Translations under genes and position numbers: made by a program | Notes under the pieces: model-generated | Database searches by the model: none | What the model was told of the DNA's origin: nothing | What the model saw: the letters and a program-made list of their open reading frames with translations, nothing else | Assembly: GCA_010909165.1 (NCBI GenBank) | Contig: MU008152.1 | Location: 124,001 to 188,000, forward strand | DNA from: Anthoceros angustus | Lineage: Eukaryota > Plantae > Anthocerotophyta | Reading direction: 5' to 3' | DNA: 64,000 bases | Shown: in pieces, positions 34,552-55,047 of the stretch | Layout of the letters: each line of letters opens with the position of its first letter | Numbering within the stretch: the stretch's first letter is position 1

Positions 34552-35761
34552 GGTAGACATGGTGGTTACTAACCCTATTTACATGGAATTCCACCTTTGA
34601 ACTAGTTATCCCAAACGGTCCAGGTTGGTTGGCAGATAAAACGGGTTGGTTGATCACCATTGGTTGGATCAACTTATGGGGGTAATTAGCTAAAGATTTT
34701 GATGAATTTATCCAAGTCCTGCGCCAAAGCATATATATCATGCAAGGAGACACGCAGCAGGGCTACCTCTCTCTCTTATTTCATGAACTGCATTTTTTCG
34801 GCAACGGGTGTCCATCGCCCTTTGAAGGGCACTTGCAGGGGCTATCTCACAAACGGCGACAACTGCTTGAAATGCATCCTCGACAACCACACTAGTATGT
34901 AGACCATCAATCTCCTTGGTACTGATACCATAGGTGGTATAAGTGATTTCACGCATGGAACTTAGTTGCTCATTTTCACACTACCTTTGGGGTCTGCCTT
35001 TGATGTCCTATGGCATATGGTCTCAGCTTCTCTCTTCCCTTTCAATAAAGGATTGCCTCCCATTACATACTTTAGCCTTCTTTTTTCTTTTCTTGTGAAT
35101 ATTAAGTTTGAACTAGTCTTTGTGAGTCTCAAGCATAATTTTCCAAAGGGAAATCAAGTTCGAGAGAAACAAAAACAAAAAGAAAAGCTATAGATTAGAA
35201 AAGTTCTTGTCCTATCACTCTCTCAGAGAGACACTGTCGAAGCACAAAAACAATCCCTAAATAAGCTCTTTAAAGTTTTAGAAATATAAATTATTATTCT
35301 TAAAATAATATTTTTAGATTATTTAGAGATTGTTTTATTATATTTATCTTAAAGATCTATCTTAATGGACGCATTATTTGTTATAACTTGATCGATCCTA
35401 TTATTTGCTATAACTTGATCCATGGTGTGGACAATGTATGTACATATGTACCCATCTCACGTGTGGATGAAGGATGGTGGGCGCACAGTACGGATTTGAT
35501 GTCAACGACCCAGTCGCGGGACGCGCAGTTGCGGGCCACCTTCGAAGGGGGGAGTTTTTTTTTTGTTTCCGTGGAAAACAGAGGAACGTTTTTGGATCGG
35601 ATTTCGCACCCCGATCCCGCTGTCATCCGCTACAAGTGCACACCTTTTGCTGGCTGCGATTTCTCTAGAGGCCATGGCCTAGCATGGCGGGAGTTGTGGA
35701 GAGATCTCCTGCATTTTCGCTCGATCGGACTGGGCTTGAGTTGCGCGGCGGCCAGCTCGCC

Positions 35762-38700
35762 ATGGCGGCGCTCCTGGCGCTGTGCTTTCTCCTGCTGCTG
35801 CAGCAGGGCCCGGCATCCGCGCAGCAGCAGCCCGTAGGTGGGAGCTCCAGGCCTGCCCTGCGGATGCGTATGGCGGCCGCTTGCATTTTCCACCTCCGAC
35901 TCACTCCGGCTTTCGTGTGACAGGATTCATCAACGTGGACTGCGGCTCCGCGCCCGGTGCCACGCCTTACACCAACCCGTCCACCGGGCTCCAGTTCGAG
36001 GCCGACAACTACATCTCCACCGGGCTCATCGGAACAGTGGACCCCGGGGTGGACGCCACTGCCGATCTGCAGACGCTGAGATACTTCCCGCCGGATTCCA
36101 CGCCCAAGAAGAACTGCTACGTCGTGCCGGTGCTGATCGGGACCCAGTACCTCATCCGGGCCTGGTTCCTGTTCGGGAACTTCATCAAGGCGCCGGATAA
36201 TGGGACCCTCTCGTTCCGGGTATGGGACCGTGATTTGCAGGATTGAAGGCGTGGGGTGGTGTGGGTTTGCGGAATTGTGCCCGCGGGTTTGTGGGTTTGC
36301 GGAAATGTGCCCACGGTTTTGTGGGTTTGTTGTGCAGCTGGGCATCGACGCCACGTTGTGGGGGAGCGTGCAAATCGACACGGTGAATGAGTACGCCAGT
36401 CCCTACTTCGAGGAGGCCCTCGTGTGGACGACCAAGCCCTTCGTGAGCGTCTGCCTGATCCGCCTCCACGACACCGACACCCCCTTCATCAACTCCCTGG
36501 AGCTCAGGCAGATCGGCCAGCCCAGCTCGTATCTGGGGGGCTTCGTCGATTCTGCTGCCAACTTGCTCGCCCTCGGGGTGAGACGGAACTTCGGGGCAGC
36601 GCCAGGCTCCGTCTTCAGGTGGCGTCATCGTTCCCCCGGCTTTGCTCTGTGGGTCGGGAGTTGGATCGCCCAGCTGGCCTCACGTTGGTTGCTGCTTGTG
36701 GGTGCTTTGCTTGGCCTTGGCCCTCCAGATTCCCGCAAGACAACTACGACCGGCTGTGGCCGGCCTACGTTCCGGCTCAAACCAGCTCGTGGACTTCCGT
36801 GGTGGCACCGCTGTACCCGGATCAGCCCATGGTCTACAACTCCTCCCAGCAGGCGGACTATGTTCCCAGCGTGGTCACGCAGACCGCCGCCACCTGCAGT
36901 GGCTGGATGTCGTACACCCTGTCGCTGGGCACTCCGCTGATTAGCTCCACCTTCTATGTGGCCATGAGCTTCGCCGAGCTCGAGGTTCTGCCGGCAGGAG
37001 AAAGGTATGTGGGACATGGTATGAGATGGCCCCTGCCTGTGCTTGATGGGCCGTGCTTGATGGGCATGCGTGTGCTCTTGGGTACCGTGCAGTCGGGGAA
37101 TGCAAGTTCGGACGAACTTCCTGAGGCCGCCATCCTCCGGCGACTACTACTATCTGGACTTGGCCGCTGTTGGAGCTCCTGGGCCATACCAAGTCTTCCA
37201 GTTTGGGAACCGGAACTACGAGCTTCCAGCCAGCGAGACGCCCACCCTCTTCTTCAACTTGAGCAGGGATCCCACGTCTGACAAGGACCCCATCATCAAC
37301 GCCTTCGAAGCCCACTTTGTCATACCAGTGGCTGCTGGAACTAGTACAGACGATGGTGAGCTGCTGTTGCACGTTTGTGTCATTGTTTGTTATTGTTTTC
37401 TCCGCTCTGCCTGCTTTCCGCAACTCACTGCTGGCCACCGTGGTGCCTTTTTCCAGTGGATGCGCTCACTTCAATCAATCTTGCAATCGGACTCCCGCAG
37501 TGGGTTGGGGATCCTTGCTCTCCCATCCCGTGGGACGAGCTCATCTGCACGGGGAACCGTGTGACAGGACTGTAGGTTGCTGCCCCGGCTCCTCTGCAGC
37601 GAAGGGAGTGTCGGAGAGGTTGCATTGGAAGGAAGTCTGTTTAAGTTCATGACGCCGCCTGCTTCTTGTCGGTGCTTGCAGGAATCTGTCGGGCAAGGGT
37701 CTCACCGGCCTCATTCCCTTCAACATCTCATTGCTCACGGAGCTCACCTCGCTGTGAGCACCGCTTCTCGATACCCTAGTCCCTTTCCACTTTGCAGCAG
37801 ACGGTCATTGTTTGTATCGAAGCTGACAGACGTTTGTGTAATGTGTGCAGAGACGTCTCTAATAACCGCTTTACTGGTCCCCTTCCGACCTGGGTGGCAA
37901 ATCTTCCTTTGCAGTCGCTGTGAGTGATAACGTCGGGTGTCGAGGAAAAACGTGCATTTGCGGTTTGCAGGATTTGTCTTCGACGTGCAGGGGACATGTT
38001 TTTGTGGTGGTGCAATCTAAAGTTTTCTTCTTCTGTTTCACAGGGATGTTTCCAACAACAACTTGAATGGTACCTTTCCTGCAACATACATCACAAGGAT
38101 ACCTACGTTTAGGTTAGGGGATGGCTTTGGTTTGTTGAATAGTCTGCGTTTCTTTTGATGCTGCAATCTGCTTGCGCCTAACCAGCAGTCATCCACCACT
38201 GTGTGCTGAAGGTATTCTGGGAATCTGCAGCTCAGCTGCCAACCTTCAAGCAGTGCCGTTTGTCCAGCATCACCACAAGAAGCTTGTGTCACTCGTCGGT
38301 TATTGTCAGGAAGGACCTGAGCGGATTCTCTTGTACGAGTTCATGCCAGGAGGAGACTTGCGGGATCGGCTTTACGCTGGTATGTCCAGCTTTGCCACCT
38401 CCGCAGTCTTCATGCTGTCCCCATGTGGGCATTCCGGTGACTTGGCCTGACTCTGATTGAAATTGTGATCGTAGGTAAACAAGCTCGACAATTTCCGCTG
38501 AACTGGAGGCAAAGGCTGCGAATAGCCCTGGATGCTGCCAAAGGTGGGGGATGAAGGCTCATGACGGTGTTCTTCATTGGCGTTCATTTCTTATGATGGT
38601 CTTTCAAGTTCTGTCCTATCTATGATCAGGTCTGGAGTACTTGCACCACGGGTGCAATCCAGCCATCATCCACAGGGATGTGAAGAGCAGCAACATCCTT

Positions 38701-39494
38701 CTGGACGACAAACTGGATGCAAAAGTTGCCGACTTCGGAATGTCCAAACTGACGGATGATGACCAAACCCATGTGATGACCATGGTGGTGGGGACTCTCG
38801 GATATCTGGATCCTGAGTAAGCACATCGTCCAGTGGCCACCCTCCGCATCCTTTCTTTGTGTTGGGGGCTTACCTCTTTGTTTCCTCCTCACCCACCATC
38901 TTACGCAACTGATGCAGGTATAACGGAACTGGGTTGCTGACCGATAAAAGCGACGTTTACAGCTTCGGGGTAGTGCTTCTTGAAATCCTTTGCGGCCATC
39001 CCCCCATCTATCACGACGGTGCTCACAACAAATTCATCGTGGAAAAGGTGACAAGTGCTGCAACCTTAGTGTGGGTTCCCTTAATTCAGACAACGTGCTT
39101 GGTTGCCCATCTCTAACAAAGCTCACACTCCAAGCAGGTGCGGGCTGCGATGAACACTGGTACCCTGGCGGAAATAGCGGATCCAGTTCTACGAGGCGAC
39201 TTCAAGCAGGAGGCAGTGTGGAGATACGTGGACGTGGCTATGTCGTGCGTGCCCCTCTCCGGCGCCGCCAGGCCCCCAATGAGCAAGGTGGTGTCCGAGC
39301 TTGTCCAGACCCTGGAGATGGAGTTCGGGCGCGACCAACTTGGGAGAAACTCCGGACACAGCGGCAACGGCAGCGGCAGCGGCTCCAACCCGCCTTCCGA
39401 CTTTTATCCCTCTGGCGTGTCACAGACAAACCCGTACGGCGTAGAGCAGCCTTCCCAAATCTTCTACAGCCATGAGGGCCCTCAAGCTCGGTGA
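35762..39494 (+). pseudogene. Malectin-like domain/LRR-I receptor-like kinase with internal deletion and frameshift
   Basis: Signal peptide, malectin-like exons (FINVDCG, YDRLW, IINAFE), GDPC motif, 3 LRR exons and kinase subdomains IV-XI ([46 protein letters not shown]). The TM helix and subdomains I-III are absent at about 38270, where the frame shifts (TGA 38318-38320). Confidence 0.8.
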
Positions 39495-39574
39495 TAGCAC
39501 GTCTTTTCGCGCTCTCCCTCCATGCCATACCGAGGTGAACGTGATCGCTCTGCCGTTCTCCCTTCCCATATTAA

Positions 39575-39864
39575 TATCTCATCCTTTCAGCCCGAGGCAG
39601 CTGCAGACTGATCAGGTCTTGGAGGAGCATCTAACGACGCAGATCTGTGCCAGTGCGTAGACATGTGTTGCGGTTGCGAAGGTGGAGGACGAGAAAGCTC
39701 GACGAGTAACGCGAATGACAAGGCTCCACATCAAATGTGTGTGCGTCCAAGAAACATGCACCAAAGACCTAATCAGCGCAGGTTGCGGGCTGACTGAATC
39801 AGACATCGACGATCTACAAGTCTTGCACAAGTCATGTGCCAGATGCAAAGACATGTCACTCCGC
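39575..39864 (+). repeat. Segment A (290 bp), copy 1; copy 2 at 42632-42921
   Basis: Same-strand direct repeat with a constant 3057-bp offset at both ends. Confidence 0.92.
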
Positions 39865-39916
39865 CAGTTATTGCCTGTTCCTACGCCCAAAATTGTCATT
39901 CATTGGTGGACGAGGA
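39856..39916 (+). repeat. 61-bp exact copy of the NAF1 3' end (55036-55096)
   Basis: TCACTCCGCCAGTTATTGCC...TGGTGGACGAGGA is identical at both places in the same orientation. Confidence 0.93.
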
Positions 39917-40050
39917 AAGCCCAGCCATTCACACTACAAGCTATTGTGACGGCCACCCAGAATTTCAAAGAAAAACTTGGAGAAGGAGCGTTCGGTCCAG
40001 TCTTCCTTGGAGTCCTCCCAGACAAACAACTCGTGGCTGTGAAACGCATG
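39916..40050 (+). pseudogene. Isolated receptor-kinase subdomain I-II fragment
   Basis: KAQPFTLQAIVTATQNFKEKLGEGAFGPVFLGVLPDKQLVAVKRM contains the Gly-rich loop and the VAVK lysine of an RLK/Pelle kinase. Confidence 0.85.
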
Positions 40051-41701
40051 ACAGCATGCCCTAACTCATGGACAGGAGAGAAATTTTCACACGTCCACAC
40101 ACAACTGCCAGTGCAAGTGCGAGTGCCAGTGCAGACCTACGGTGTCCTTGGCCGCCATGGTTCCGGTGCTACATGCGGGCCGGTGTGACCTAGCGGGCAC
40201 CGTCCGTGGTCCACACGGACGAACGAACGAACGAACGACTTGCTCACAGTCACTGCCTGCCCGATGCCTGATGCCTGATGTGGATGCCACCACGGCCTCC
40301 TCACAGCTCAAAGAAGCAGCAGCACGAAAGGCAGCAGCAATTCCGTTGGACTGTTACTGTTCCGTCGGACGCGCCATGTGTTGGTTGGCTCGACAACAAC
40401 GCAGCGGCAAGCGTTCGAGTTCAAAGCAGGAAGGGCAGCGTTGAGATATGACACGGACGTCACCCTGCCCCCGAGACCGGACCAGACCCAGGCCCAGACG
40501 GATTTAATTCAGCCTTCCTTCCCGTCCCCACTTCCCGCCATGCCCATGGGCCCCATGGGCCCCATGCGCCTCATTCATGGCCGATGATGACCATGGCCCC
40601 TTCTCACCGACAAACCCCATTATACCATCATACTGCCCTTTATACTCCATGCCCCGTCGGCCCCGTCGACTGGCCGTCGAGCCGGGGACCACGTCAAGCG
40701 GGCCGCGGGGCCACCTAACCAGCGCCCGCGCGCCAGTTCCGCTTCCGAATCGCTCTGGCCGCGGAGGCCGCCGTGGGGTAGCTTTAGGCCTGCCACAGCG
40801 GGGCCTCCTGTCTGTCGTCCATTTTATATTGCCTTTCGCCTCAAGCGCCTGCCGGCCGGGGGCCCTCTCTCATCACACTCATTCATCACTGTGAGCCGAG
40901 CCTGGGCCTGAGCCTGAGCCTGGGCCTGAGCCTGAGCCTCAGCCTGAGCCTGAGCCTGAGCCTCAGCCTGAGCCTCAGCCAGGAGCCGGATGAGACGCTG
41001 AGTCGGGCTGAGACGCGCTGAGACGCGCCGAGACGTCTGAGACGTTCTGAGACGCGCTGGCTGCTGCATTCCGTGCTGTGCGCGAAGCGAGGCCACGGGG
41101 GGCGGGGTGGGTGTGTGGCTGGCGCGCGGGCCTGCAGATCGGGGTGCTGGCCGGGGCGGGCGATGGCGATGGCGATCAGGAGGGCGGGAGCGCAGGGAGT
41201 GGTGGCAGCACAGACCTGAGACGTGAGATGTGGCCCGTGCTGGCGTTGGCTGCGGCTCCGCCGGGAGCGGGACGGCCTGGCTGCGCCCGCATTGGCTTCT
41301 GGAGCGGCTCCGCGGGCGGAAACCTGCGCCTTCGCAACTGGTGCCAGTCCGGGCCACCGATGAGGGCAGACGTGCACGCCAGAAATTGCGAGCTTCCCTG
41401 AATGTCAGAGTTTCTTTCCCGAATCAAGGCTCGCCTTGAACCCGGCCAACGCGCCCGCCTGTGATGACACAGGTAGGTGGAGTGGTGCAACGTCTTCCTG
41501 CCCGGCGGGACGCGGTGCCTGCTTGCCGGAATTTCTGACTGAGATTTGCATGATCCGTGGCCATGCGGCTTTCAGGGCGTGCCAGAAATTTTTTCTGGGT
41601 GAATTGCTTGCGAGTCTGCGGCTCGTTTTCGGTGGTTAGGTCGCTGGTTGGACATGGGTGGTGGTGGTGGAATCTGGATGTCTCGCTTCTCATTGTCGAG
41701 G
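40041..41701 (+). repeat. Segment B (GC-rich, about 1.66 kb, Raf-kinase upstream region), copy 1
   Basis: Repeated at 43238-44934, 45466-46924 and 47060-47897. Contains a (GCCTGA)n microsatellite and CTGAGACG repeats. Confidence 0.92.
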
Positions 41702-42637
41702 AGGGAAGGGGAGGAGTAGATCTAGTCGGAAGATAAGGTGTTCAATTATTCATGCTCTGTCGATCGGGCTCCGGAGTGTTTTGTAGGTTTCTTTCTTTTG
41801 GCGTCAGCGTCCTCTGTCCTGGACTGTGATGGAAGCTCTCTGCTTGCATGTAGTTTTAGGTGCTGTGCGCGTAACGGTCGGCACAAAGCTGGCAGAATTT
41901 CGACGCACGTGTATGGCCCTAGTCCCGACATACAATTGCCATTTGTTGTTAACGAGGCGCATGTGGATATTTGTAGTCACATATGTAGGTGTATGCCTTT
42001 GGTGCGGCTTTAGTATGATAGACACTCGTCCAGGAAAAGGATAATGCTCTCAGCCGCTGAAACATTTTCTTGCCAGAAGGCTTGGGGGGTCACCTTCCTT
42101 CAACTGTACGTTGCGGATCAGAGTTTCATGAGCTTTTCTGCACGCCGACATGATTCCTGCGTGAAGTGTTACCGAGCATTTCGGTTTGTCCTTCCAGTTG
42201 TCCCTAATCACTGGCTTGTTCTGGCTTGTCTTATCCCTAGGATGGGTCCGAGCAGCTCTGGCAAGCATCAAGAAAGGTTACTCCTTCCTCTGTATTTGGT
42301 CTGTCTTGACCCCAAGGACGGGATATGATGGAACTGTAGAGGCTATTATAAGTGCACTACGTCTCTGGTTTACGTCTTCTGCAGGATAGGCAATAGATGG
42401 CCGTGATTTCACTTTGCCTGTTTCCCGTTTACAGGGTCCTACACATCCGTGATTGAAATTCTTGTTCCTTTTGTATCTACTCAGGAAAGAGACTACGCCA
42501 TTATTCAGACAGACGGGCAGTCATCGGAAGGAAGCGGGTGTAAAACTTGGTTGGGAAGATGAGCAATATAGCGATTGTCTCCCAGGATGTAGGTAGAGCA
42601 GGAGGATCAGCCTTGTGTCCTCCTGAGGATGTATCTC
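41702..42637 (+). pseudogene. Truncated duplicate of the Raf-like kinase 5' leader and first coding exon
   Basis: Matches 47898-48851 with small indels and ends at TATCTC, where it joins segment A. Confidence 0.88.
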
Positions 42638-42921
42638 ATCCTTTCAGCCCGAGGCAGCTGCAGACTGATCAGGTCTTGGAGGAGCATCTAACGACGCAGA
42701 TCTGTGCCAGTGCGTAGACATGTGTTGCGGTTGCGAAGGTGGAGGACGAGAAAGCTCGACGAGTAACGCGAATGACAAGGCTCCACATCAAATGTGTGTG
42801 CGTCCAAGAAACATGCACCAAAGACCTAATCAGCGCAGGTTGCGGGCTGACTGAATCAGACATCGACGATCTACAAGTCTTGCACAAGTCATGTGCCAGA
42901 TGCAAAGACATGTCACTCCGC
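42632..42921 (+). repeat. Segment A, copy 2
   Basis: Direct repeat of 39575-39864. Confidence 0.92.
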
Positions 42922-42985
42922 GCCACGGCATGCCTTTTGCCCCAATAATTCACAGTCCTTCAGCCGCCGGAGAGGCGATGCCACT

Positions 42986-43190
42986 GATCTCGCTCTACAC
43001 CGGGAAAGCGAGAAACCGAGGCTGGTGAGACCTCCATCACACTTGTGTCTAGAAAGCAACGAATCCGAGCTTGCGAACACCGATCTCGTTCGTACACCGA
43101 GGAGAGCGAGAAGCCGAGGCTGATAAGATTGCCCTCACACTCTTGTGCCTGGACGCAACAAATCCGCGCTTGCGAACGCCAATCTCGCTC
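42986..43190. repeat. Imperfect tandem repeat, about 96-99 bp x2, within unique segment C
   Basis: Units start GATCTCGCTC (42986), GATCTCGTTC (43082) and AATCTCGCTC (43181), sharing GCGAGAA.CCGAGGCTG and GCTTGCGAAC. Confidence 0.7.
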
Positions 43191-43237
43191 CAATTTGTCT
43201 GGATGCAATGAATCACGAATTCGAGCTCGCAAGGTGC

Positions 43238-44934
43238 GAAACGCATGACAGCATGCCCTAACTCATGACCACAGGAGGAGAAATTTCACACAACGTCCAC
43301 ACACAACTGCCAGTGCAAGTGCGAGTGCCAGTGCGAGACCTACGGTGTCCTTGGCCGCCATGGTTCGGTGCTACATGCGGGCCGGTGTGACCTAGCGGGC
43401 ACCGTCCGTGGTCCACACACGGACGAACGAACGAACGAACGACTTGCTCACAGTCACTGCCTGCCCGATGCCTGATGCCTGATGTGGATGCCACCACGGC
43501 CTCCACTCACAGCTCAAAGAAGCAGCAGCAGCACGAAAGGCAGCAGCAATTCCGTTGGACTGTTACTGTTCCGTCGGACGCGCCATGTGTTGGTTGGCTC
43601 GACAACAACAGCGCAGCGGCAAGCGTTCGAGTTCAAAGCAGGAAGGGCAGCGTTGAGATATGACACGGACGTCACCCTGCCCCCGCGAACCGAGACCGGG
43701 ACCCAGACCCAGGCCCAGACGGATTTAATTCAGCCCCTTCCCCTTCCCCGTCCCCACTTCCCGCCATGCCCATGGGCCCCATGGGCCCCATGCGCCTCAT
43801 TCATGGCCGATGATGACCATGGCCCCCTTTCTCACCGACAAACCCCCATTATACCATCATACTGCCCTTTATACCTCCCCCCGTGCCCGTCGGCCCCGTC
43901 GACTGGCCGTCGAGCCGGGGACCACGTCAAGCGGGCCGCGGGCCGCACCTAACCCGGCGCCCGCGCCCACCGGGCTAGCGCTTCCGGGGGAATCGCTCTG
44001 GCCGCGGAGGCCGCCGTGGGGTAGCTTTAGGCCTGCCGCACAGCGGGGGCCTCCTGTCTGTCGTCCATTTTATATTGCCTTTCGCCTCAAGCGCCTGCCG
44101 GCCGGGGGCCCTCTCTCATCACACTCATTCATCACTGTGAGCCGAGCCTGGGCCTGAGCCTGAGCCTGGGCCTGAGCCTCAGCCTGAGCCTGAGCCTGAG
44201 CCTCAGCCTGAGCCTCAGCCAGGAGCCGGATGAGACGCTGAGTCGGGCTGAGACGCGCTGAGACGCGCCGAGACGTCTGAGACGTTCTGAGACGCGCTGG
44301 CTGCTGCATTCCGTGCTGTGCGCGAAGCGAGGCCACGGGGGGCGGGGTGGGAGTGTGGCTGGCGCGCGGGCCTGCAGATCGGGAATTGCTGGCCGGGGCG
44401 GGCGATGGCGATGGCGATCGGGAGGAGGGCGGGAGCGCAGGGAGTGGTGGCAGCACAGACCTGAGACGTGAGATGTGGCCCGTGCTGGCGTTGGCCAGGC
44501 TCCGCCGGGAGCGGAGGGACGGCCTGGCTGCGCCCGCATTGGCTTCTGGAGCGGCTCCGCGGGCGGAAACCTGCGCCTTCGCAACTGGTGCCAGTCCGGG
44601 CCACCGATGAGGGCAGACGTGCACGCCAGAAATTGCGAGCTTCCCTGAATGTCAGAGTTTCTTTCCCGAATCAAGGCTCGCCTTGAACCCGGCCAACACA
44701 GCAACGCGCCCGCCTGTGATGACACAGGTAGGTGGAGTGGTGCAACGTCTTCCTGCCCGGCGGGACGCGGTGCCTGCTTGCCGGAATTTCTGACTGAGAT
44801 TTGCATGATCCGTGGCCATGCGGCTTTCAGGGCGTGCCAGGAAATTTTTTCTGGGTGAATTGCTTGCGAGTCTGCGGCTCGTTTTCGGTGGTTAGGTCGC
44901 TGGTTGGACATGGGTGGTGGTGGTGGAGGAATCT
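43238..44934 (+). repeat. Segment B, copy 2
   Basis: Direct repeat of segment B that jumps into Raf exon sequence at 44934. Confidence 0.92.
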
Positions 44935-45474
44935 AGCGATTGTCTCCCAGGATGTAGGTAGAGCAGGAGGATCAGCCTTGTGTCCTCCTGAGGATGTATC
45001 TCCTCGGACTGCCTCTCAAGAACTTTGGGAGACAGGAAGTTTAAGATCGAGGATTCGGATGGCTTCTACTCAGTTGTGCGGTATAGCTTCTTTGGTTTGT
45101 GATATATGCATTGTTTTGCCTGCTGGCCATATTACTCTGATACGTGCGAGCTCCTTTGACAGTTTGGGCTGTTCACTGATGTTTTCTCACAGTTTATGGC
45201 ATTTACTTGATATTGCAGAGTGCAAGCTTGAAAGTTCGTTTCTCCAGTGGGCTACCGACTCTTAAAGAGCTTCAAGAACTGGGGACTGAGGCCCCCTCCT
45301 CAGATGTGCTACTTGTAGATACCAAGGAAGATCTGGTTCTCGCTGGATTGAAGGAGCTTGTCTCAGAACTAGTTAAAGATTTAGGAGCAAATGTTTCTCT
45401 TACAACCAAAAAATAGCAGAAGTGGTGGGCTACTCTTCACTCCTGTGACTTGATGCCCACTGCGGCTGATGCCT
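44934..45474 (+). pseudogene. Internal Raf-like kinase fragment (exons plus intron), frameshifted
   Basis: Matches 48783-49329; lacks one C in ATTCCGGAT and one A in the A-run before TAGCAG relative to the intact gene. Confidence 0.88.
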
Positions 45475-46924
45475 GATGTGGATGCCACCACGGCCTCCAC
45501 TCACAGCTCAAAAAGCAGCAGCACGAAAGGCAGCAGCAATTCCGTTGGACTGTTACTGTTCCGTCGGACGCGCCATGTGTTGGCTCGACAACAACAGCGC
45601 AGCGGCAAGCGTTCGAGTTCAAAGCAGGAAGGGCAGCGTTGAGATATGACACGGACGTCACCCTGCCCCGCAGACTGAGACCGGGACCCAGACCAGGCCC
45701 AGACGGATTTAATTCAGCCCTTCCTTCCCGTCCCGCCATGCCCATGGGCCCCATGGGCCCCATGCGCCTCATTCATGGCCGATGATGACCATGGCCCCTT
45801 TCTCACCGACAAACCCCATTATACCATCATACTGCCCTTTATACCTCCCCCCGTGCCCGTCGGCCCCGTCGACTGGCCGTCGAGCCGGGGACCACGTCAA
45901 GCGGGCCGCGGGCCGCACCTAACCCGGCGCCCGCGCCCACCGGGCTAGCGCTTCCGGGGGAATCGCTCTGGCCGCGGAGGCCGCCGTGGGGTAGCTTTAG
46001 GCCTGCCGCACAGCGGGGGCCTCCTGTCTGTCGTCCATTTTATATTGCCTTTCGCCTCAAGCGCCTGCCGGCCGGGGCCTCTCTCATCACACTCATTCAT
46101 CACTGTGAGCCGAGCCTGGGCCTGAGCCTGAGCCTGGGCCTGAGCCTGAGCCTCAGCCTGAGCCTGAGCCTGAGCCTCAGCCTGAGCCTCAGCCAGGAGC
46201 CGGATGAGACGCTGAGTCGGGCTGAGACGCGCTGAGACGCGCCGAGACGTCTGAGACGTTCTGAGACGCGCTGCTGCATTCCGTGCTGTGCGCGAAGCGA
46301 GGCCACGGGGGCGGGGTGGAGTGTGGCTGGCGCGGGCCTGCAGATCGGGAATTGCTGGCCGGGGCGGGCGATGGCGATGGCGATCAGGAGGAGGCGGGAG
46401 CGCAGGGAGTGGCAGCACAGACCTGAGACGTGAGATGTGGCCCGTGCTGGCGTTGGCTGCGGCTCCGCCGGGAGCGGGAGGGACGGCCTGGCTGCGCCCG
46501 CATTGGCTTCTGGAGCGGCTCCGCGGGCGGAAACCTGCGCCTTCGCAACTGGTGCCAGTCCGGGCCACCGATGAGGGCAGACGTGCACGCCAGAAATTGC
46601 GAGCTTCCCTGAATGTCAGAGTTTCTTTCCCGAATCAAGGCTCGCCTTGAACCCGGCCAACACAGCAACGCGCCCGCCTGTGATGACACAGGTAGGTGGA
46701 GTGGTGCAACGTCTTCCTGCCCGGCGGGACGCGGTGCCTGCTTGCCGGAATTTCTGACTGAGATTTGCATGATCCGTGGCCATGCGGCTTTCAGGGCGTG
46801 CCAGGAAATTTTTTCTGGGTGAATTGCTTGCGAGTCTGCGGCTCGTTTTCGGTGGTTAGGTCGCTGGTTGGACATGGGTGGTGGTGGTGGAGGAATCTGG
46901 ATGTCTCGCTTCTCATTGTCGAGG
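45466..46924 (+). repeat. Segment B, copy 3 (5'-truncated)
   Basis: Begins at CTGATGCCT (equivalent to 43472) and ends at TTGTCGAGG. Confidence 0.92.
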
Positions 46925-47068
46925 TAAGCTTAATTGCAACTAATTTGTGACTGGAAATGACCTCACTGTAATTGACTTCCAGTCCAGAGCATGATATGGA
47001 CAGTCAGCTACAGTACCTGAGAAGAGGGCAATCCTCGCCTGTTGCTGGGGCCATGATGATCATTCATC
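46916..47068 (+). pseudogene. 153-bp copy of Raf-like kinase intron plus exon (50276-50428)
   Basis: Identical by eye, including the GTAAGC...TTCCAG intron. Confidence 0.92.
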
Positions 47069-47897
47069 ACTGTGAGCCGAGCCTGGGCCTGAGCCTGAGC
47101 CTGGGCCTGAGCCTGAGCCTCAGCCTGAGCCTGAGCCTGAGCCTCAGCCTGAGCCTCAGCCAGGAGCCGGATGAGACGCTGAGTCGGGCTGAGACGCGCT
47201 GAGACGCGCCGAGACGTCTGAGACGTTCTGAGACGCGCTGCTGCATTCCGTGCTGTGCGCGAAGCGAGGCCACGGGGGCGGGGTGGAGTGTGGCTGGCGC
47301 GGGCCTGCAGATCGGGAATTGCTGGCCGGGGCGGGCGATGGCGATGGCGATCAGGAGGAGGCGGGAGCGCAGGGAGTGGCAGCACAGACCTGAGACGTGA
47401 GATGTGGCCCGTGCTGGCGTTGGCTGCGGCTCCGCCGGGAGCGGGAGGGACGGCCTGGCTGCGCCCGCATTGGCTTCTGGAGCGGCTCCGCGGGCGGAAA
47501 CCTGCGCCTTCGCAACTGGTGCCAGTCCGGGCCACCGATGAGGGCAGACGTGCACGCCAGAAATTGCGAGCTTCCCTGAATGTCAGAGTTTCTTTCCCGA
47601 ATCAAGGCTCGCCTTGAACCCGGCCAGCACAGCAACGCGCCCGCCTGTGATGACACAGGTAGGTGGAGTGGTGCAACGTCTTCCTGCCCGGCGGGACGCG
47701 GTGCCTGCTTGCCGGAATTTCTGACTGAGATTTGCATGATCCGTGGCCATGCGGCTTTCGGGGCGTGCCAGGGGGGAAATTTTTTTTCTGGGTGAATTGC
47801 TTGCGAGTCTGCGGCTCGTTTTCGGTGGTTAGGTCGCTGGTTGGACATGGGTGGTGGTGGTGGAGGAATCTGGATGTCTCGCTTCTCATTGTCGAGG
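47060..47897 (+). repeat. Segment B, copy 4 (5'-truncated), continuous with the intact Raf gene
   Basis: Begins at TCATTCATC and runs on into the Raf leader. Confidence 0.92.
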
Positions 47898-48658
47898 AGG
47901 GAAGGGGAGGAGTAGATCTAGTCGGAAGATAAGGTGTTCAATTATTCATGCTCTGTCGATCGGGCTCCGGAGTGTTTTGTAGGTTTCTTTCTTTTGGCGT
48001 CAGCGTCCTCTGTCCTGGACTGTGATGGAAGCTCTCTGCTTGCATGTAGTTTTAGGTGCTGTGCGCGTAACGGTCGGCACAAAGCTGGCAGAATTTCGAC
48101 GCACGTGTATGGCCCTAGTCCTGCACGACATACAATTGCCATTTGTTGTTAACGGAGGCGCATGTGGATATTTGTAGTCACATATGTAGGTGTATGCCTT
48201 TGGTGCGGCTTTAGTATGATAGACACTCGTCCAGGAAAAAGGATAATGCTCTCAGCCGCTGAAACATTTTCTTGCCAGAAGGCTTGGGGGGTCACCTTCC
48301 TTCAACTGTACGTTGCGGATCAGAGTTTCATGAGCTTTTCTGCACGCCGACATGATTCCTGCGTGAAGTGTTACCGAGCATTTCGGTTTGTCCTTCCAGT
48401 TGTCCCTAATCACTGGCTTGTTCTGGCTTGTCTTATCCCTAGGATGGGTCCGAGCAGCTCTGGCAAGCATCAAGAAAGTAGGTTACTCCTTCCTCTGTGT
48501 ATTTGGTCTGTCTTGACCCCAAGGACGGGGATATGATGGAACTGTAGAGGCTATTATAAGTGCACTACGTCTCTCTGGTTTACGTCTTCTGCAGGATAGG
48601 CAATAGATGGCCGTGATTTCACTTTGCCTGTTTCCCGTTTACAGGGTCCTACACATCC

Positions 48659-51600
48659 GTGATTGAAATTCTTGTTCCTTTTGTATCTACTCAGGAAAGA
48701 GACTACGCCATTATTCAGACAGACGGGCAGTCATCGGAAGGGGAAGCGGGTGTAGAAAACTTGGTTGGGAAGATGAGCAATATAGCGATTGTCTCCCAGG
48801 ATGTAGGTAGAGCAGGAGGATCAGCCTTGTGTCCTCCTGAGGATGTATCTCCTCGGACTGCCTCTCAAGAACTTTGGGAGACAGGAAGTTTAAGATCGAG
48901 GATTCCGGATGGCTTCTACTCAGTTGTGCCGGTATAGCTTCTTTGGTTTGTGATATATGCATTGTTTTGCCTGCTGGCCATATTACTCTGATACGTGCAA
49001 CGAGCTCCTTTGACAGTTTGGGCTGTTCACTGATGTTTTCTCACAGTTTATGGCATTTACTTGATATTGCAGAGTGCAAGCTTGAAAGTTCGTTTCTCCA
49101 GTGGGCTACCGACTCTTAAAGAGCTTCAAGAACTGGGGACTGAGGCCCCCTCCTCAGATGTGCTACTTGTAGATACCAAGGAAGATCTGGTTCTCGCTGG
49201 ATTGAAGGAGCTTGTCTCAGAACTAGTTAAAGATTTAGGAGCAAATGTTTCTCTTACAACCAAAAAAATAGCAGAAGTGGTGGGCTACTCTTCACTCCTG
49301 TGACTTGATGCCCACTGCGGCTGATGCCTTTGCCCTACCTGCAGTTTCTCTTTTCACATTCATGTCCTATTTGTGTTCACTCTCAGTTTTTGGCTGTACA
49401 GGTAGCTGACTTTTATGGAGGTCCAGTTTTCGAAGGTGGCAATCTAAAGACACATCCTGAGGAGAACTTGCAGGTTGTTATGGCCAGGGACTATAAGGTT
49501 CTGGGGCAGATCCAAAAGGGTTTCTGTAGGCCACGAGCACTGCTTTTCAAAGTTCTTGCAGATCATGTGGGGCTTCCTAGCCGTCTTTTCATGGTAAGGA
49601 GATTCTGGCGTGAGATTGCTAAGAAAGCTCGTGCTGTTTGATATCTTTGGTGCCCTACTATGCCCTGACACATTGCATTTTGTCAATCACAGGGTTTGCA
49701 GTTAGAATCTGTTCCCAGCAGCTCCCTCATATGTGCCATTCCAAACAAGCACCTGTCAAACATTGTGACATTGAATGGTGTGGAGTTTATCATTGATGTC
49801 CTGCGACATCCTGGTCACTTGCGGCCATTTTCCAGGAAGGTTTTGGTGATGTATCACATTGCAGGTGCTGGAGACAGCGACTCTGCAGACTATGATTCCT
49901 GTGACTCGCCTTTGGAGCCGAACAGCCCTCTTTTCGGATGTTCAGACAGGCCAGAGAGTGAGAGGTATATAGCTATGCACCCCTCCTGCAAGTGTGATGC
50001 ATACAATACAATATATCTGCAATATAGAAATCATCTTCCTCAATACTCAAACTGGCTGCCTCTTCTGCAAATCTTCCTCAGTGCTCCCTTGCATGAGCAG
50101 GATTAGGCTCTCCCACTGCAATACAAAATGGATGCGGTGACCTCAAAATGCATCTTGGCTCAACATATCCGTGCACTTGCCGAAGGAATTTGTAGTGGTC
50201 TAACTGCTTCAATACTTCTTAGAGCCTTGTGTGACTAGTGTATGCAAGGTCTTCTAATGTGTGAACACTGGAATCTTGTCGAGGTAAGCTTAATTGCAAC
50301 TAATTTGTGACTGGAAATGACCTCACTGTAATTGACTTCCAGTCCAGAGCATGATATGGACAGTCAGCTACAGTACCTGAGAAGAGGGCAATCCTCGCCT
50401 GTTGCTGGGGCCATGATGATCATTCATCCATCCTTACGGCCCCCTTCAGGTTCTGAGGGGAAGTTGAGGTGATTACTGGTGTCTTTGGAGCTGTCTGGTC
50501 CAATATTTCAAAAGTTTGTACTGCATTCACAGTGGAATTAGCCATCAACTTCTCGTATGAACCTGTTCTGTCATTTCTTTACTTATTTGGGTGCCTGAGT
50601 AAAGTTAAGATGTCTCTTCGTGCAGCCCATCACAGAGTGAGCCAGACCTTGTGAACTCATATCGTCGTCGGCATCGTCGTAAAGCTGGACCTGATGATCA
50701 TCCTATGGTTTTCAGGTCTGAATGCTTACTTATTGAGGCGTAGCTCACAGTTTTTCAGTGTGCATATTCTGTTTTGGTAGTTTGGACCTTGTACAAAGCC
50801 TTAGTTGCTGAAAATCAGGTTTCTCTTCAACAGCCCAGAACACTCTTATGAGTTGCAGCTGCCTCATGGGAAACCAAACTCGGATGGTGTTCACAGCTTT
50901 CCCTCAAGGTGAATTGAGTTTTCTATCTTTCTTTGTCATCGTGGCTGGCATGGTCAATATATCAGAGTCAACACATGTTCAACACCATGCAAGTATTTGC
51001 TGTCCTTGTCTTGGAGCTTCTCTTGATGCACGAATTGATTCACCTGGTCATCTTGTGACAGCCCTGAGCATCCTCAAGCGCGTTTCAGGTCGGTGAAGCG
51101 TGTAGGCTCAGAAGAAGGAAGTGTGTCAAGGTATTTATCCGTGTTGTCTCTGGTCATGGCACTCATGTTTGTTCTGGTGATGACAAGCGCATGGCTGTTC
51201 TTGTTTAAATCTTAGCAGTCCAGAACATGCAATATCCAGAGCACGCGTACCGTCAATGCTCAGTGGCAGTAGGCGTGGACCTGGAGAGGAGACGGACACT
51301 GTTTCAGTTTCCAGGTGAGTCGCGGTTACGGCTTGTTGGCCCTTCATTTAGCAGTGGAGCTATTTGTACTCATCTTACCCCGTTTCTTGATCTTTCAGCC
51401 CTGAGCATTCTCCTCAGCATGCGACGATGGCAGACAAGCCCTCAGCAATATTTAGAAGGAGGTCAGCATGTGGCTTCAATTCTAGAGAAGAGAATGGCAG
51501 GTGACATAGCTGTTTACTGGGGTGGTGTGTTCGTGTGTAGGTGAGGTAGAGCTGTTTCTTGTTGTAAATTCTTGTGTTGTATGCCCATCTGTCCTCCTGA

Positions 51601-54119
51601 TGGGTTCGGGGCTATGTAAAATACTTCTGGCAGTTGGACAGTCTCTAACTTATCTTCAAATTTACGTTAATGGGTATCTTCTCTCTTATGCAGGCGAGAG
51701 AGGTCCCTTTCAGTCGATATAAAACACGAGGGCCGAGGCATTGATTTTCTCCAGTACATTACAGAGCCATCTTCCTCCAAGTGAGGCTATTGCCTTGTCC
51801 TTGTACTAGAACGAATCTTTCTTTTTGTTGATCTGCTGGACCTTCTCTCTTGCTTCAGAGTGTGATGCACATATGTATGGTACTTCAACAGGGACACAAC
51901 GGCAGTAGCTGGAACTTGGCTTGGTGAAATGTACAGGTATGTGCTTAGTATGGAACTGCAGCTTATTTCTTCTGTTGATGAGTTGTAAGGCTAATGTGGC
52001 CCTCTTGCTGCAGGGGTAATCACAGCTCACCATCTGAGGCTCGCAGAATGAAAAAACGAAGTGCTGCACCTGAAGTCAGTGATGAAGTAGTCAGGTACTG
52101 GAACAGGCCTATAGTCGCACATTTATCTCTGTTGCGATCAAGAACCTGTTGGTCCATATAACTGAAGGAGTGCATGTTCAAGGCTGTGAAACTGTTGAAG
52201 CGTGACCGACTAGCCCAATATTTTTTGTAATGTTCCAGAGCTGTTCGTGCGATGAATGAAGCAATCAAGCAAGAGCGGCGCCGGTTGAAAGAGCAGGGTA
52301 GTGGAGATGTGATTTCGACTGGCTCCTTTGAGGGAAGTGAGGTATGTGTGGGTGACTGCGAGACAGACAGACCAGTCATGGTATGCACTTGCAGAGAGTC
52401 CACTTGTGAGGTTGCATAATGGGAGGTGGAAATATATTTTCTGTACCTTTGTAGTCATTTGGGAGGCTCTAAAGAAAGTAGATTGGATGCTTTTTATGAT
52501 GCAGGGATCAGACAGTAAACAGGCTTCTGAGGGCGATTCGCTCTTGCGGCATGTCCTTGGTGCACCAAGTGATTTATCCAGAGAAATAGCTGGTACCCCT
52601 TCTGGAGTTACTGAAGCAGAACAGGTGTCTTCTGGAAAGGCATCTTCATCCCGCTCGGATGGCTTCTCTACATTGAAGACAATCTCCCTTGTAGACCGGC
52701 AGTTGATGCCATATGAGGAGTGGAACATAGACTTTTCCGAACTTCGAATAGGTGTACGTGTTGGTATTGGTAAGTTGATTATGAATGCATTAGTGCAGGT
52801 ATTTGCAGCAGGCAGGTGTGCAGCTTGTGTCAACGTTTGTCTCAGCAACTGTGTAAACTACAGGGTCTTTTGGCGAGGTCTTCAGAGGTGTCTGGAAGGG
52901 GACTGAGGTGGCTATAAAGGTGATGCTTGAACAGGACTTGACCGAGGAGAATACGGAAGACTTCTGTAATGAAATATCCCTTCTAAGGTACGAGGTACTC
53001 TCTGTCCTCATCTAATCGTGTGACCCTATCTCTTACTTTCTGGTACAAGTAGGGAAGATCCAGTATTGCTCCTGGCTAGGATTGTCCAAAATCCGAGGAC
53101 ACTAATCCCGATGCCTGTCTGTTTTGCATCTTGCAGCCGACTGCGACACCCTAATGGTGAGCAGAATCTTCAGGACTCCTTTCTGGGGCTCTGCTCAGTT
53201 CGCTTAGGTACTGATGTCTTATGCAATGGTTGTGTGGATGGTTGCCAGTAATACTGTTCCTGGGCGCTTGTACAAAGCCACCTCATCTATCCATGGTTAC
53301 GGAGTACATGCACATGGGTTCTCTGTATCGACTTATTCACACCACTGGGCAAGGCAAGAAACTGAGTTGGCGGCGAAGGTTGAAAATGTTGCGCGATATT
53401 TGTAGGTCTGTCACTAGTGAATGGCTCTGCGTTGTGCATTGGGCTTCATAGGATTGAGGGCATATTGTGCTGTGCTGACTACGGGATTGGTTTGGTGCAG
53501 AGGAATGATGTGTATTCACCGAATGAATATTGTGCATCGTGATCTTAAAAGTGCTAATTGTTTAGTGGATAAGCATTGGGCGGTTAAAATATGTGATTTT
53601 GGCCTATCTCGAATAGCCAAAGATGGGCCAGTTCGAGACGCTGCTGCCGCTGGAACACCTGAATGGATGGCCCCTGAGCTTCTCCGGAACGAACCAGTTT
53701 CGGAAAAGTGTGACATATTCAGTCTAGGTGTGATAATGTGGGAGCTTTGTACCCTGAAAAAGCCCTGGGACGGCGTAAAACCCATGCAGGTATGGTGCTG
53801 AATTGCGTGGTTATGCACGTCCCGCAGTGTCTTCGTGCAGACCAATTGGTTTGATCTGTCCTTTTCCTTGCAGGTGGTTTACGCAGTTTCCCAGAAAAAA
53901 GCACGGCTGGATTTGCCTGAGGGATTTCTCGGCAAGTTGATTTCGGGTATGTTAGATGTACCTGTCTGACTTTTGTCTGGATACTGCCGGTCGTAATCGA
54001 GAATATTTGCTGAGGTGACGATGCGTGGTGCAGATTGTTGGGAAGAGGAGCCAAGTGCACGACCGAGTTACGATGAAATTCTTTCACGGCTACATGAATG
54101 TGAGTTTTTATTAAATTGA
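48659..54119 (+). CDS. Raf-like MAPKKK, B1/At3g58640-like (EDR1 N-terminal domain + kinase), multi-exon; start uncertain
   Basis: [12 protein letters not shown]...[104 protein letters not shown]; last exon ends ECEFLLN* at 54119. The true ATG is unresolved (about 48440-48775). Confidence 0.9.
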
Positions 54120-54460
54120 CCATGCCAGGAACCGCCGTGACCAGTAGCAAGTTTTGCAAAATCTCAAGTCTCGTCTCGAAAGGATACCTTGTGTATATGT
54201 AGGAACATTTCCCCTAAAAAAGTCCTGCACGTACTGCACAGTTGTACCATAGATGAATGAATGAGGATTTGTACACTTTCAATGCCAATTTCACCTAATA
54301 GAAATTTTCAAACATCCGACGACATCTCCCTTAGTGGTACAGAGATGAGACATTCCTGCGAGATGGGAAGGCTTCCTTTCTCGAGACCGTTTGCGTGGCC
54401 AGGGTGCGTGCACAATGTGATGCGCCCTACGCCTGTCATTAGCGAGGTTTGGCAAAAAAA

Positions 54461-54913
54461 TCACATAGAAGGGCCTCTGGGTGCATTTCCCTTGGACCAC
54501 TCCACTCCTCGGCTCTTCACCAAAATCCATCTCAACAGACGCTCCTCCTTGTTCAGGTAAGACAACTCCTCAACGATGCTCGGACTCACCATCATGGTCA
54601 TCTGCATCATTTGCGCCTGCACCCAGCAAACCGGAATACTCTAAGACAGTTGGATGGTGTGAGCTGGTAGCAAGGGACAGTGCACAGTAGCTGAGCTTAG
54701 CTGAGCTGAGCTGAGCTGAGCTGAGCTCACCTCACGATAGCGGCCATCACGCTTCTTAATACCGTAGGCCAGCCCTACGCGCCCGAACGACTTCACGTTG
54801 GTGATGACCCCTTGCTTGGCATACACGCGCTGGCCAAGGCGCCCCAAGAGCTCCACCATGCCGCGCCGCTCCAGCTGCGGCTTCGCTAGCATCACGAAGT
54901 CGTACAGCGGCAT
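54461..54913 (-). CDS. rps6: Bacterial-type (probably mitochondrial) ribosomal protein S6, two exons
   Basis: MPLYDFVMLAKP...GVITNVKSFG...LAYGIKKRDGRYRE | AQMMQMTMMVSPSIVEELSYLNKEERLLRWILVK. Confidence 0.88.
54690..54727. repeat. (GCTGA)n pentanucleotide microsatellite in the rps6 intron
   Basis: About 7 units immediately after the splice donor on the minus strand. Confidence 0.85.
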
Positions 54914-55047
54914 GCTTCCTTCCCTTGATGCCCAGATCTGCCCTGCCCTGTCTGATTGCTCCTCGCTCGCCCGCAGGTTACAAGTATCCTCCGTAATAGG
55001 GTTTGGGGACGGCCCAACTCACCGACATAAAGAGCTCACTCCGCCAG

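Follow-up and report, generated by a model that had tools for sequence, protein, structure and literature searches.

Organization of the assembled locus

The window, a stretch of 64,000 nucleotides from the Anthoceros angustus assembly (contig MU008152.1), carries a receptor-kinase (RLK) gene and an intact Raf-like kinase gene, with a mosaic of re-copied pieces assembled between them. The features are listed below, where A, B, C and X denote segments of the mosaic and X1 a short-read run from the same organism.

35600-39500, plus strand: RLK, Malectin-like/LRR receptor kinase gene (Pfam Malectin_like and PK_Tyr_Ser-Thr; translations)
39575-39864, plus strand: A copy 1; the native left context of A is the RLK 3′ UTR
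39856-39916, plus strand: 61-nt NAF1-side piece, copy of 55036-55096
39904-40052, plus strand: X, RLK exon piece; juxtamembrane region and kinase subdomains I-II (LGEGAFGPV...VAVKRM)
40041-42640, plus strand: B1 with a Raf 5′ copy, matching 43238-44125 and 47060-48854; the noisiest copy
42632-42921, plus strand: A copy 2 (A2); joined on the left to the Raf 5′ copy (8/9 overlap), on the right the native A-C adjacency
42922-43234, plus strand: C, native single-copy spacer containing a tandem repeat (99 bp, 2.1x); X1 contig depth 14-15
43235-44934, plus strand: B2, anchored on the left by native C; about 0.7% different from X1 contigs
44926-45474, plus strand: Raf (EDR1/CTR1-domain) exon copy; source region 48775-49329
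45466-46924, plus strand: B3, matching 43472-44946; bounded by the 9-nt overlaps CTGATGCCT on the left and TTGTCGAGG on the right
46916-47068, plus strand: 153-nt Raf intron/exon piece, copy of 50276-50428, with a 9-nt overlap at each end
47060-54600, plus strand: B4 (to 48851) and the intact EDR1/CTR1-type Raf-like kinase gene (Pfam hits)

Self-BLAST and junction alignments recovered every repeat pair, reproducing the mosaic layout of the original prediction. Three pairs have 100% identity (39575-39864 and 42632-42921; 39856-39916 and 55036-55096; 46916-47068 and 50276-50428), and 44926-45474 matches 48775-49329 at 98.6% identity. Segment B occurs in four direct copies, at 40041-42637, 43235-44946, 45466-46924 and 47060-48851. 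The stretch from 47060 to 54600, in which Pfam places the EDR1 domain at about 48850-49640 and the kinase domain at about 53420-53800 of the Raf gene, is the native locus and the donor of most mosaic pieces. Its order is matched by a 2030-nt contig of X1 and by a 10.6-kb contig of the sister-species run X2. The surplus sequence amounts to 7.5 kb and comprises B1, A2, the Raf-exon copy and B3, together with inserts of 61, 149 and 153 nt.

The first copy of A runs at its right end into the NAF1 fragment through a 9-nt overlap (39856-39864), while the X1 contig shows C as the native continuation of A. The source of the 61-nt piece lies within a minus-strand NAF1-side ORF (55048-55899); the copy thus keeps the genomic strand but not the gene strand. 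In the X1 and X2 contigs, this piece occurs solely with its native flanks.

The RLK gene retains kinase subdomains IV-XI but lacks the transmembrane segment, the juxtamembrane region and subdomains I-III between positions of about 38100 and 38262. Piece X is single-copy within the window, and a 1458-nt X1 contig has it between different flanks. The native flanks of X (30 letters from X1) were sought in the window and were absent from it. The truncated RLK may itself be a casualty of the mosaic artefact discussed below.

Joins between the pieces

Four junctions have exactly 9 nt shared by both donors, as had been claimed: TCACTCCGC at 39856, CTGATGCCT at 45466, TTGTCGAGG at 46916 and TCATTCATC at 47060. 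At all four, the flanking sequence of the other donor is unrelated. The junction alignments also reproduced the imperfect 9-mers at 42632 (8/9) and 44926 (7/9), the latter marking a 912-nt forward jump from B2 to the Raf exon copy. The notion of a uniform overlap of about 9 nt holds for the four exact junctions but not for the borders of X, which overlaps its neighbors by 13 nt (TGGTGGACGAGGA) and 12 nt (GAAACGCATGAC). Positions 42921 (A-C) and 43235 (C-B) are native adjacencies and contain no junction. The perfect overlaps (9, 9, 9, 9, 12 and 13 nt) have 3 to 8 G+C, with no GC dependence, and overlaps of at least 9 nt are far above chance expectation (about 4^-9 per junction).

All eight junctions are direct; relative to a baseline of native 9-mer matches, 539 on the same strand versus 298 on the opposite strand, this orientation bias is mildly significant (p about 0.03). 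The backward jumps are uniform, at 3284, 2922 and 3368 nt (2.9-3.4 kb). The original prediction had placed every donor within 15 kb; this is in keeping with donor distances of 0.9-9.2 kb but doubtful for X, whose native flanks in X1 are absent from the window. Microhomology at the joins and templated segments from nearby, by which MMBIR/FoSTeS products are recognized, are both present, and the junctions look like microhomology-guided switches.

Two other readings of the 9-mers were rejected. They are not 9-bp target-site duplications of a Tn5- or Mutator-like element, because each 9-mer is native in both donors and therefore represents an overlap. Nor do they fit a k-mer rule on homopolymer-compressed sequence: after compression, the lengths vary (8, 8, 7 and 8) whereas the raw length is constantly 9, so that any seed rule would work on the raw sequence.

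Native order in short-read contigs

Run X1 has 0 substitutions relative to the window over more than 3 kb, and its sample is common to an RNA run. On these grounds, it comes from the same organism and most likely from the same clone as the assembly. We used its Logan contigs, which show presence better than absence and drop rare variants. The RLK 3′ UTR, the 290-bp A and C lie in uninterrupted succession on a 770-nt contig, which a 31-mer graph could not have yielded had A been flanked by two different sequences on each side. A 572-nt contig links C to B, and the 2030-nt contig runs from B through the Raf 5′ region into the Raf exons.

Depth agreed with this order. The 770-, 572- and 2030-nt contigs have depths of 15.2, 14.0 and 14.8, respectively, versus 14.3 for the unique X, and the word depth of 14.8 of the 2030-nt contig compares with about 38 expected under the copy numbers of the assembly. 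The X1 depth bins equal the sum of the native contigs to the second decimal. The re-copied segments therefore show no copy-number gain; B is present at 1x, and the fourfold depth predicted for it was not borne out. No X1 contig spans the junctions at 39856, 39916, 40041, 42632, 44926 or 45466; breakpoint junctions were thus absent from the organism's genomic reads as represented by these contigs, contrary to the expected junction support. Unspanned junctions and 1x depth of B, the outcomes that the original prediction had itself named as speaking against a real rearrangement, were both obtained in same-clone short-read contigs.

Around the junctions at 46916 and 47060, X1 contains 12 of 17 sampled words (0.71) of the interval 46886-47098. 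Junction-specific sequences account for 23% of the 31-mers there, and none of the runs has a larger share of the words across the two junctions than X1. An X1 contig ends no more than 1 nt from the donor breakpoint 49329/49330, perhaps a sign of a weak branch, but the partner breakpoint, 43472, is crossed unbroken. A low-frequency subclone with the mosaic is conceivable, since Logan drops rare variants.

The sister species carry the simple order. In X2, B, Raf and NAF1 follow one another in native order within the single 10.6-kb contig, and the Raf exons lie 5708 nt from the NAF1 piece, versus a native distance of 5707. In X12, the B-to-Raf joint is the same as the native one. The mosaic is thus absent from the X1 short reads, and the relatives are collinear (X2 and X12). 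The native order RLK-A-C-B-Raf, which had been proposed from the window, is directly confirmed by these short-read contigs, from the organism itself as well as a sister species. A mobile-element identity for B (transposon, Helitron or Pack-MULE with gene fragments) was rejected because B corresponds to the Raf upstream/5′ region, which is conserved in the sister species and single-copy in short reads. No usable newer assembly of the species was found in our search, and the window ORFs (UPF1, B-region, A/C and Raf 5′) had no record in the public contig index.

Sequence differences among the copies

Nearly all differences among the B copies are small indels, with hardly any substitutions. B1 has 0 substitutions and 18 letters deleted in 918, with 17 gaps relative to X1; compared with B4 and with the X1 contig, it shows deletions only. 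The Raf-exon copy likewise has 0 substitutions and 6 letters deleted in 547 relative to the native sequence, and the upstream parts of B1 and B3 have 4-7% indels. Letters present in X1 and in the relatives are missing from the window at 41953 (G), 42274 (AGT), 42290 (TG), 42319 (G), 44512 (G) and 45078 (C). In contrast to the copies, the long unique ORFs for UPF1 (1254 aa) and TWD40-1 (1677 aa) are intact, showing that the noise is confined to duplicated copies. The errors of the extra copies are of the platform-type consensus kind: deletion-only differences that represent long-read consensus noise and not divergence. Local reassembly by Pilon was rejected as a source of these copies, since they have long-read-type deletion noise and are not Illumina-accurate.

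Origin of the mosaic

Taken together, the mosaic is present in the assembled contig but very probably has no counterpart in the genome of the clone that was sequenced, where the locus would read RLK-A-C-B-Raf with each segment once. The original prediction had favored one genomic replication event (MMBIR/FoSTeS or Pol theta), for which we found no support, as same-clone contigs show the native order at 1x; its fallback, a technical artefact, is the reading that these contigs uphold. We infer the step at which the artefact arose. The extra 7.5 kb would have been introduced at the long-read stage, by either of two routes. A layout or consensus error may have strung overlapping tiles together at short exact seed matches instead of merging them, or the assembler may have retained one aberrant long molecule or read. 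Short-read polishing would then have cleaned the copies that touch unique native flank (B2 by C, B4 by Raf), and the unanchored copies (B1, B3 and the Raf-exon copy) would have been left with raw long-read deletion noise. On the other side, exact overlaps of 9-13 nt and pieces templated nearby resemble the products of genuine template switching by a polymerase. A literature search for long-read artefacts with microhomology joins found nothing specific.

We give an even chance to the first route, in which the layout or consensus step of the assembler linked overlapping read tiles from a single locus wherever short seeds matched exactly, without merging them. Direct repeats, skips and uniform back-jumps are as expected from it, with all junctions direct. 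The overlap minimum is threshold-like (9, 9, 9, 9, 12 and 13 nt) and GC-independent, and the starts and ends of the units both move rightwards, tile-like, with back-jumps of 2.9-3.4 kb. Moreover, published hornwort ONT assemblies were made with layout or fuzzy-graph assemblers (miniasm; wtdbg-1.2.8) that apply no read-consensus voting at layout. The consensus tool of wtdbg v1 is k-mer-based, but papers quote wtdbg-cns commands with k=15 and not 9-mers, and one jump, of 9.2 kb, is long for a local consensus window. To our knowledge, joining at 9-mers is not documented for any assembler routine.

The second route, one or a few long molecules with serial switches made by a library-prep polymerase or in a rare somatic cell, is possible but less probable. 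An assembler would keep such a read, as it is contained in no normal read. Each pass through B has its own noise pattern, as from passes along one read, and exact microhomologies with local, same-strand donors suit copy-choice on one template. Single-molecule, ultra-complex MM-BIR products are known in human cells (PMC13065848). However, the hornwort papers name ligation kits without amplification, and in vivo joins usually have 0-9 bp (median about 3 bp), are often blunt or inserted and occur in both orientations (PMC6902434, PMC13065848).

A real clonal rearrangement, made by one or a few MMBIR/FoSTeS-type events, private to the long-read culture and absent from the X1 material, is unlikely. 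It would fit the microhomology, the templated local pieces and the alternation of forward and backward jumps; in addition, the RLK gene has lost an exon region, of which X in the mosaic may be a part, an arrangement expected from a conservative BIR path. However, X1, most likely from the same clone, shows the native order at 1x, and the copies carry 1-7% deletion noise, whereas real copies under many long reads should polish equally. We regard as equally improbable a real serial switching process with a threshold of at least 9 nt, strictly direct, private or somatic, chromoanasynthesis-like and acting at many loci, from which the short-read tissue was free.

An old history fixed in the species, in which successive tandem duplications upstream of Raf were followed by microhomology-mediated deletions, is scarcely credible: the structure is formally equal to three nested tandem duplications and three deletions, and the 94-99% identity of the B copies is age-like, but the differences are deletions with essentially no substitutions, and a single copy, in native order, occurs in short reads of the species itself and in two sister species. 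An RNA-templated (reverse-transcriptase) mosaic was rejected on account of the intergenic C context, the promoter-side B, the intron sequence included and the NAF1 piece antisense to its gene. An MDA/phi29 chimera was rejected as well, since all junctions are direct and the candidate source papers describe ligation libraries and mention no amplification.

Comparison with known systems

As in long-read false duplications and misjoins, the structure is found only in the long-read contig, short-read depth is 1x, and the duplicated copies are unpolished with deletion-biased errors. The joins on exact 9- to 13-nt overlaps and the templated pieces of 61-153 nt are not commonly described for such artefacts.

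Chimeras made by phi29 in MDA are reportedly mostly inverted, with partners within about 10 kb and short junction overlaps. The mosaic shares the local partners and short overlaps but has 8/8 direct junctions. Templated insertions by Pol theta, or plant filler DNA, form at repaired breaks. They consist of nearby short pieces with microhomology borders, usually overlap by 1-6 bp with inserts measuring tens of bp, and are heritable and present in all reads. The pieces described here are likewise copied from nearby with microhomology borders, but the segments reach 2.6 kb and are absent from short reads.

The mosaic resembles FoSTeS/MMBIR products, such as those at the PLP1 locus (PMC6902434) and in mitotic MM-BIR chromoanasynthesis (PMC13065848), in its serial forward and backward switches, the amplification of one locus, locally templated segments and microhomology at the joins. 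It differs in that it is absent from the organism's short-read DNA and all segments are direct. Furthermore, overlap at FoSTeS/MMBIR join-points has a median of about 3 bp and amounts to 2-9 bp in roughly a quarter of them (PMC6902434, PMC13065848), whereas the mosaic has no blunt joins or untemplated insertions and its perfect overlaps are all at least 9 nt long.

Significance

The relevance of these observations is to data quality, as a warning for users of the assembly. False mosaics, with their duplicated promoters, gene fragments and apparent "arrays," can be misread as tandem duplication, exon shuffling, gene-family expansion or pseudogenes. Two signs together flag them: at the donor sites, short-read contigs of the same clone continue without interruption at 1x, and the copies depart from the native sequence by deletions only. 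If a specific assembler routine or library step is the cause, uniform 9-nt joins and back-jumps of about 3 kb would be its fingerprint. The locus itself is an ordinary single-copy neighborhood of a receptor-kinase gene and a Raf-like-kinase gene, and the mosaic has no biological importance.

Structure of the mosaic

Self-BLAST of the window reproduced exactly every repeat pair listed in the original prediction, which had proposed serial template switching (MMBIR/FoSTeS) in the genome. The flanking genes and the pieces of the mosaic are as follows, A being a segment that follows the 3′ UTR of the receptor kinase gene (RLK).

~35.6-39.5 kb, + strand: RLK, malectin-like/LRR receptor kinase, upstream of the mosaic
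39575-39864 = 42632-42921: repeat pair A, 290 nt, 100% identical
39856-39916 = 55036-55096: NAF1-side piece, 61 nt, 100% identical
40041-42637: B1, direct copy of the GC-rich segment B
43235-44946: B2, direct copy of B
45466-46924: B3, direct copy of B
47060-48851: B4, direct copy of B
44926-45474 = 48775-49329: Raf-exon copy, 98.6% identical
46916-47068 = 50276-50428: Raf piece, 153 nt, 100% identical
~48.85-49.64 kb (EDR1 domain) and ~53.4-53.8 kb (kinase domain): EDR1/CTR1-type Raf-like kinase, downstream of B4
55.8-56.5 kb, minus strand: Gar1/Naf1 gene

Identity among the four B copies is 94-99%. Three-way alignment of junctions with their two donors bore out the exact 9-nt overlaps at 39856, 45466, 46916 and 47060, as well as the imperfect 9-mers at 42632 (8/9) and 44926 (7/9). 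An RLK exon piece, X (39904-40052), has overlaps of 13 nt with the NAF1-side piece and of 12 nt with B1. The perfect overlaps are 9, 9, 9, 9, 12 and 13 nt long, with G+C counts ranging from 3 to 8. Converted to native coordinates, the back-jumps measure 3284, 2922 and 3368 nt and the forward jumps 9180, 912 and 2379 nt, and each unit of the series (39575-48851) both starts and ends further to the right than the one before, like overlapping tiles.

The part of B common to all four copies starts with a (TGAGCC)n microsatellite of 14-15 units followed by a 10-mer repeat (40892-40980, 44138-44220, 46106-46194 and 47073-47161); junction 47060 directly precedes that of B4. The native single-copy spacer C contains a 99-bp tandem repeat (42987-43190; 2.1 copies, 79% matches), within which the short-read contigs break (43104/43110).

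Genes around the mosaic

The RLK gene has a gap at 38100-38262, where the TM, the juxtamembrane region and kinase subdomains I-III should be encoded. X, 149 nt long and 1.7 kb downstream of this gap, is unique within the window and encodes a receptor-kinase juxtamembrane segment with subdomains I-II, i.e., the protein part missing from RLK. In the short-read run X1, X lies in a 1458-nt contig between different flanking sequences, for which a search of the window found no match. The truncation of RLK may be a further skip of the same artefact, or X may be a piece of a paralogue.

Elsewhere in the window, UPF1 is one uninterrupted ORF of 1254 aa (4409-8173, +). Its protein is 85% identical to that of a liverwort and 79-82% to those of other land plants, and no annotated protein is closely related to it. 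As UPF1 is a single ORF in a relative's contig too (L001:1120-4890; 94% aa identity), the intronless state looks like a lineage trait rather than an assembly or cDNA artefact.

Short reads of the same strain show the native order

X1, whose sample also has an RNA run, contains 65% of the 31-mers sampled from 42500-48500, compared with 5-9% for three related species. Contigs of X1 and the three relatives were aligned over 39530-45529. Because X1 shows no substitutions relative to the window over >3 kb, only small gaps, it most likely represents the same strain.

Over this region the X1 contigs show a simple order only. One of 770 nt (depth 15.2) links the RLK 3′ UTR to C across the full 290 nt of A, another of 572 nt (depth 14.0) links C to B, and a third of 2030 nt (depth 14.8) leads from B through the 912 nt skipped by B2 into the Raf exons, its parts matching 44355-44927 (B), 41669-42568 (the 912 nt) and 44934-45474 (Raf exons). 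Together with B-Raf contigs of sister species, they confirm the native order that had been proposed, RLK-A-C-B-Raf. In a 31-mer graph, an exact 290-nt repeat with two left and two right contexts would stop a contig; since the 770-nt contig traverses the whole of A, junctions 42632 and 39856 are absent from X1, or at most rare.

Depth points to a single copy. The 2030-nt contig has about the depth of C (15.2) and X (14.3), both unique, whereas the copy numbers of the assembly (4x, 2x and 2x for its three parts) would give a mean of ~38; the ~4x depth over B anticipated for a real event was not seen. No X1 contig other than the native ones was found over the junctions of this region, 39856, 39916, 40041, 42632, 44926 and 45466, and the depth bins at each of them equal the contributions of native contigs almost exactly (2.43 = 32 x 15.2 / 200; 7.39 ~ (61 x 18.1 + 26 x 14.3) / 200; 10.3 ~ (39 x 14.8 + 98 x 15.2) / 200). 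For junctions 46916 and 47060, X1 contains 12 of the 17 sampled words of 46886-47098, where 23% of 31-mers are junction-specific, and no public run contains more. The 2030-nt contig ends within one base of donor breakpoint 49329/49330 (equivalent to 45474) of junction 45466, either by coincidence or at a weak graph branch; the partner breakpoint, 43472, is traversed unbroken.

Thus, the mosaic is present in the assembled sequence but absent from the clone's short-read DNA. The native order at single-copy depth does not support a replication-based genomic rearrangement.

In sister species, one 10.6-kb contig of organism B carries B, the 912 nt, the Raf exons and, 5708 nt beyond these, the 61-nt NAF1-side piece (native distance in the window, 55036 - 49329 = 5707), and organism D has the same B-to-Raf joint. 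These contigs identify B as the conserved region upstream and at the 5′ end of the Raf gene, not as a mobile element.

Differences between the copies

Relative to B4, B1 (41669-42568) lacks 18 letters, and the Raf-exon copy lacks 6 relative to its native counterpart. All of these deletions fall in B1 or the Raf-exon copy, and neither comparison shows a substitution. The X1 contig represents the native copy, as it shows 17 and 6 gap letters relative to B1 and the Raf-exon copy, again without substitutions. Letters present in X1 and the sister species are missing from the window copies at 41953 (G), 42274 (AGT), 42290 (TG), 42319 (G), 44512 (G) and 45078 (C). Compared with B2, the upstream parts of B1 and B3 show differences of 4-7%, nearly all small deletions in homopolymers or short repeats. 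B2 itself differs from the X1 contigs by ~0.7% at most. This pattern is that of errors in a noisy long-read consensus, not of divergence. The noise is confined to the duplicated copies, since the long unique ORFs of UPF1 (1254 aa) and TWD40-1 (1677 aa) are intact. Copies adjoining a unique native flank (B2 at C, B4 at Raf) would have been polished and unanchored ones left unpolished.

B4 has a G/T homopolymer expansion at 47755-47790 (GGGGGGAAATTTTTTTT) that is absent from B1-B3 (B2 equivalent, 44818-44850). As the X1 contig is closer to B2 there, even the "native" B4 seems not to be error-free, polishing having apparently been divided among the copies.

Origin of the mosaic

The native order at 1x and the deletion-only noise support the technical artefact that the original prediction held in reserve, and the mosaic is very probably not a real genome feature. 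It would have arisen at the long-read stage. We favor, at roughly even chances, an in silico layout or consensus error of the long-read assembly: every junction is direct, the minimum overlap is sharp and independent of base composition, the units progress like tiles, and back-jump size is fixed at ~3 kb. No tool routine joining at 9-mers was found. One hornwort nanopore project used minimap2-miniasm, Racon and six rounds of Pilon (PMC8075897), and another wtdbg-1.2.8, Pilon and SSPACE, on a single-spore clone that was also the source of RNA (PMC7027989). Miniasm and wtdbg build contigs from read layouts, with no vote on structure across many reads, and the wtdbg v1 consensus tool is k-mer-based. 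The artefact verdict is independent of the assembly route used.

The main alternative, less likely, is a physically aberrant single molecule retained by the assembler, produced by polymerase switching at the library stage or by a rare somatic event; both hornwort projects prepared ligation libraries without amplification (PMC8075897, PMC7027989). In vivo join-points described in the literature differ: at PLP1, only about a quarter have 2-9 bp of microhomology and many are blunt or with insertions (PMC6902434), and mitotic MM-BIR has a median overlap of 3 bp in both orientations (PMC13065848). In contrast, the perfect overlaps of the mosaic are 9-13 nt, all direct. A genuine clonal rearrangement, confined to the tissue behind the long reads, is improbable. 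Short-read contigs drop rare variants, and a low-frequency subclone carrying the mosaic could escape them. Since the copies lack substitutions and the locus is single-copy both in this species and in relatives, an old evolutionary origin is excluded.

The mosaic is therefore of low biological interest, and useful as a warning flag on this assembly.
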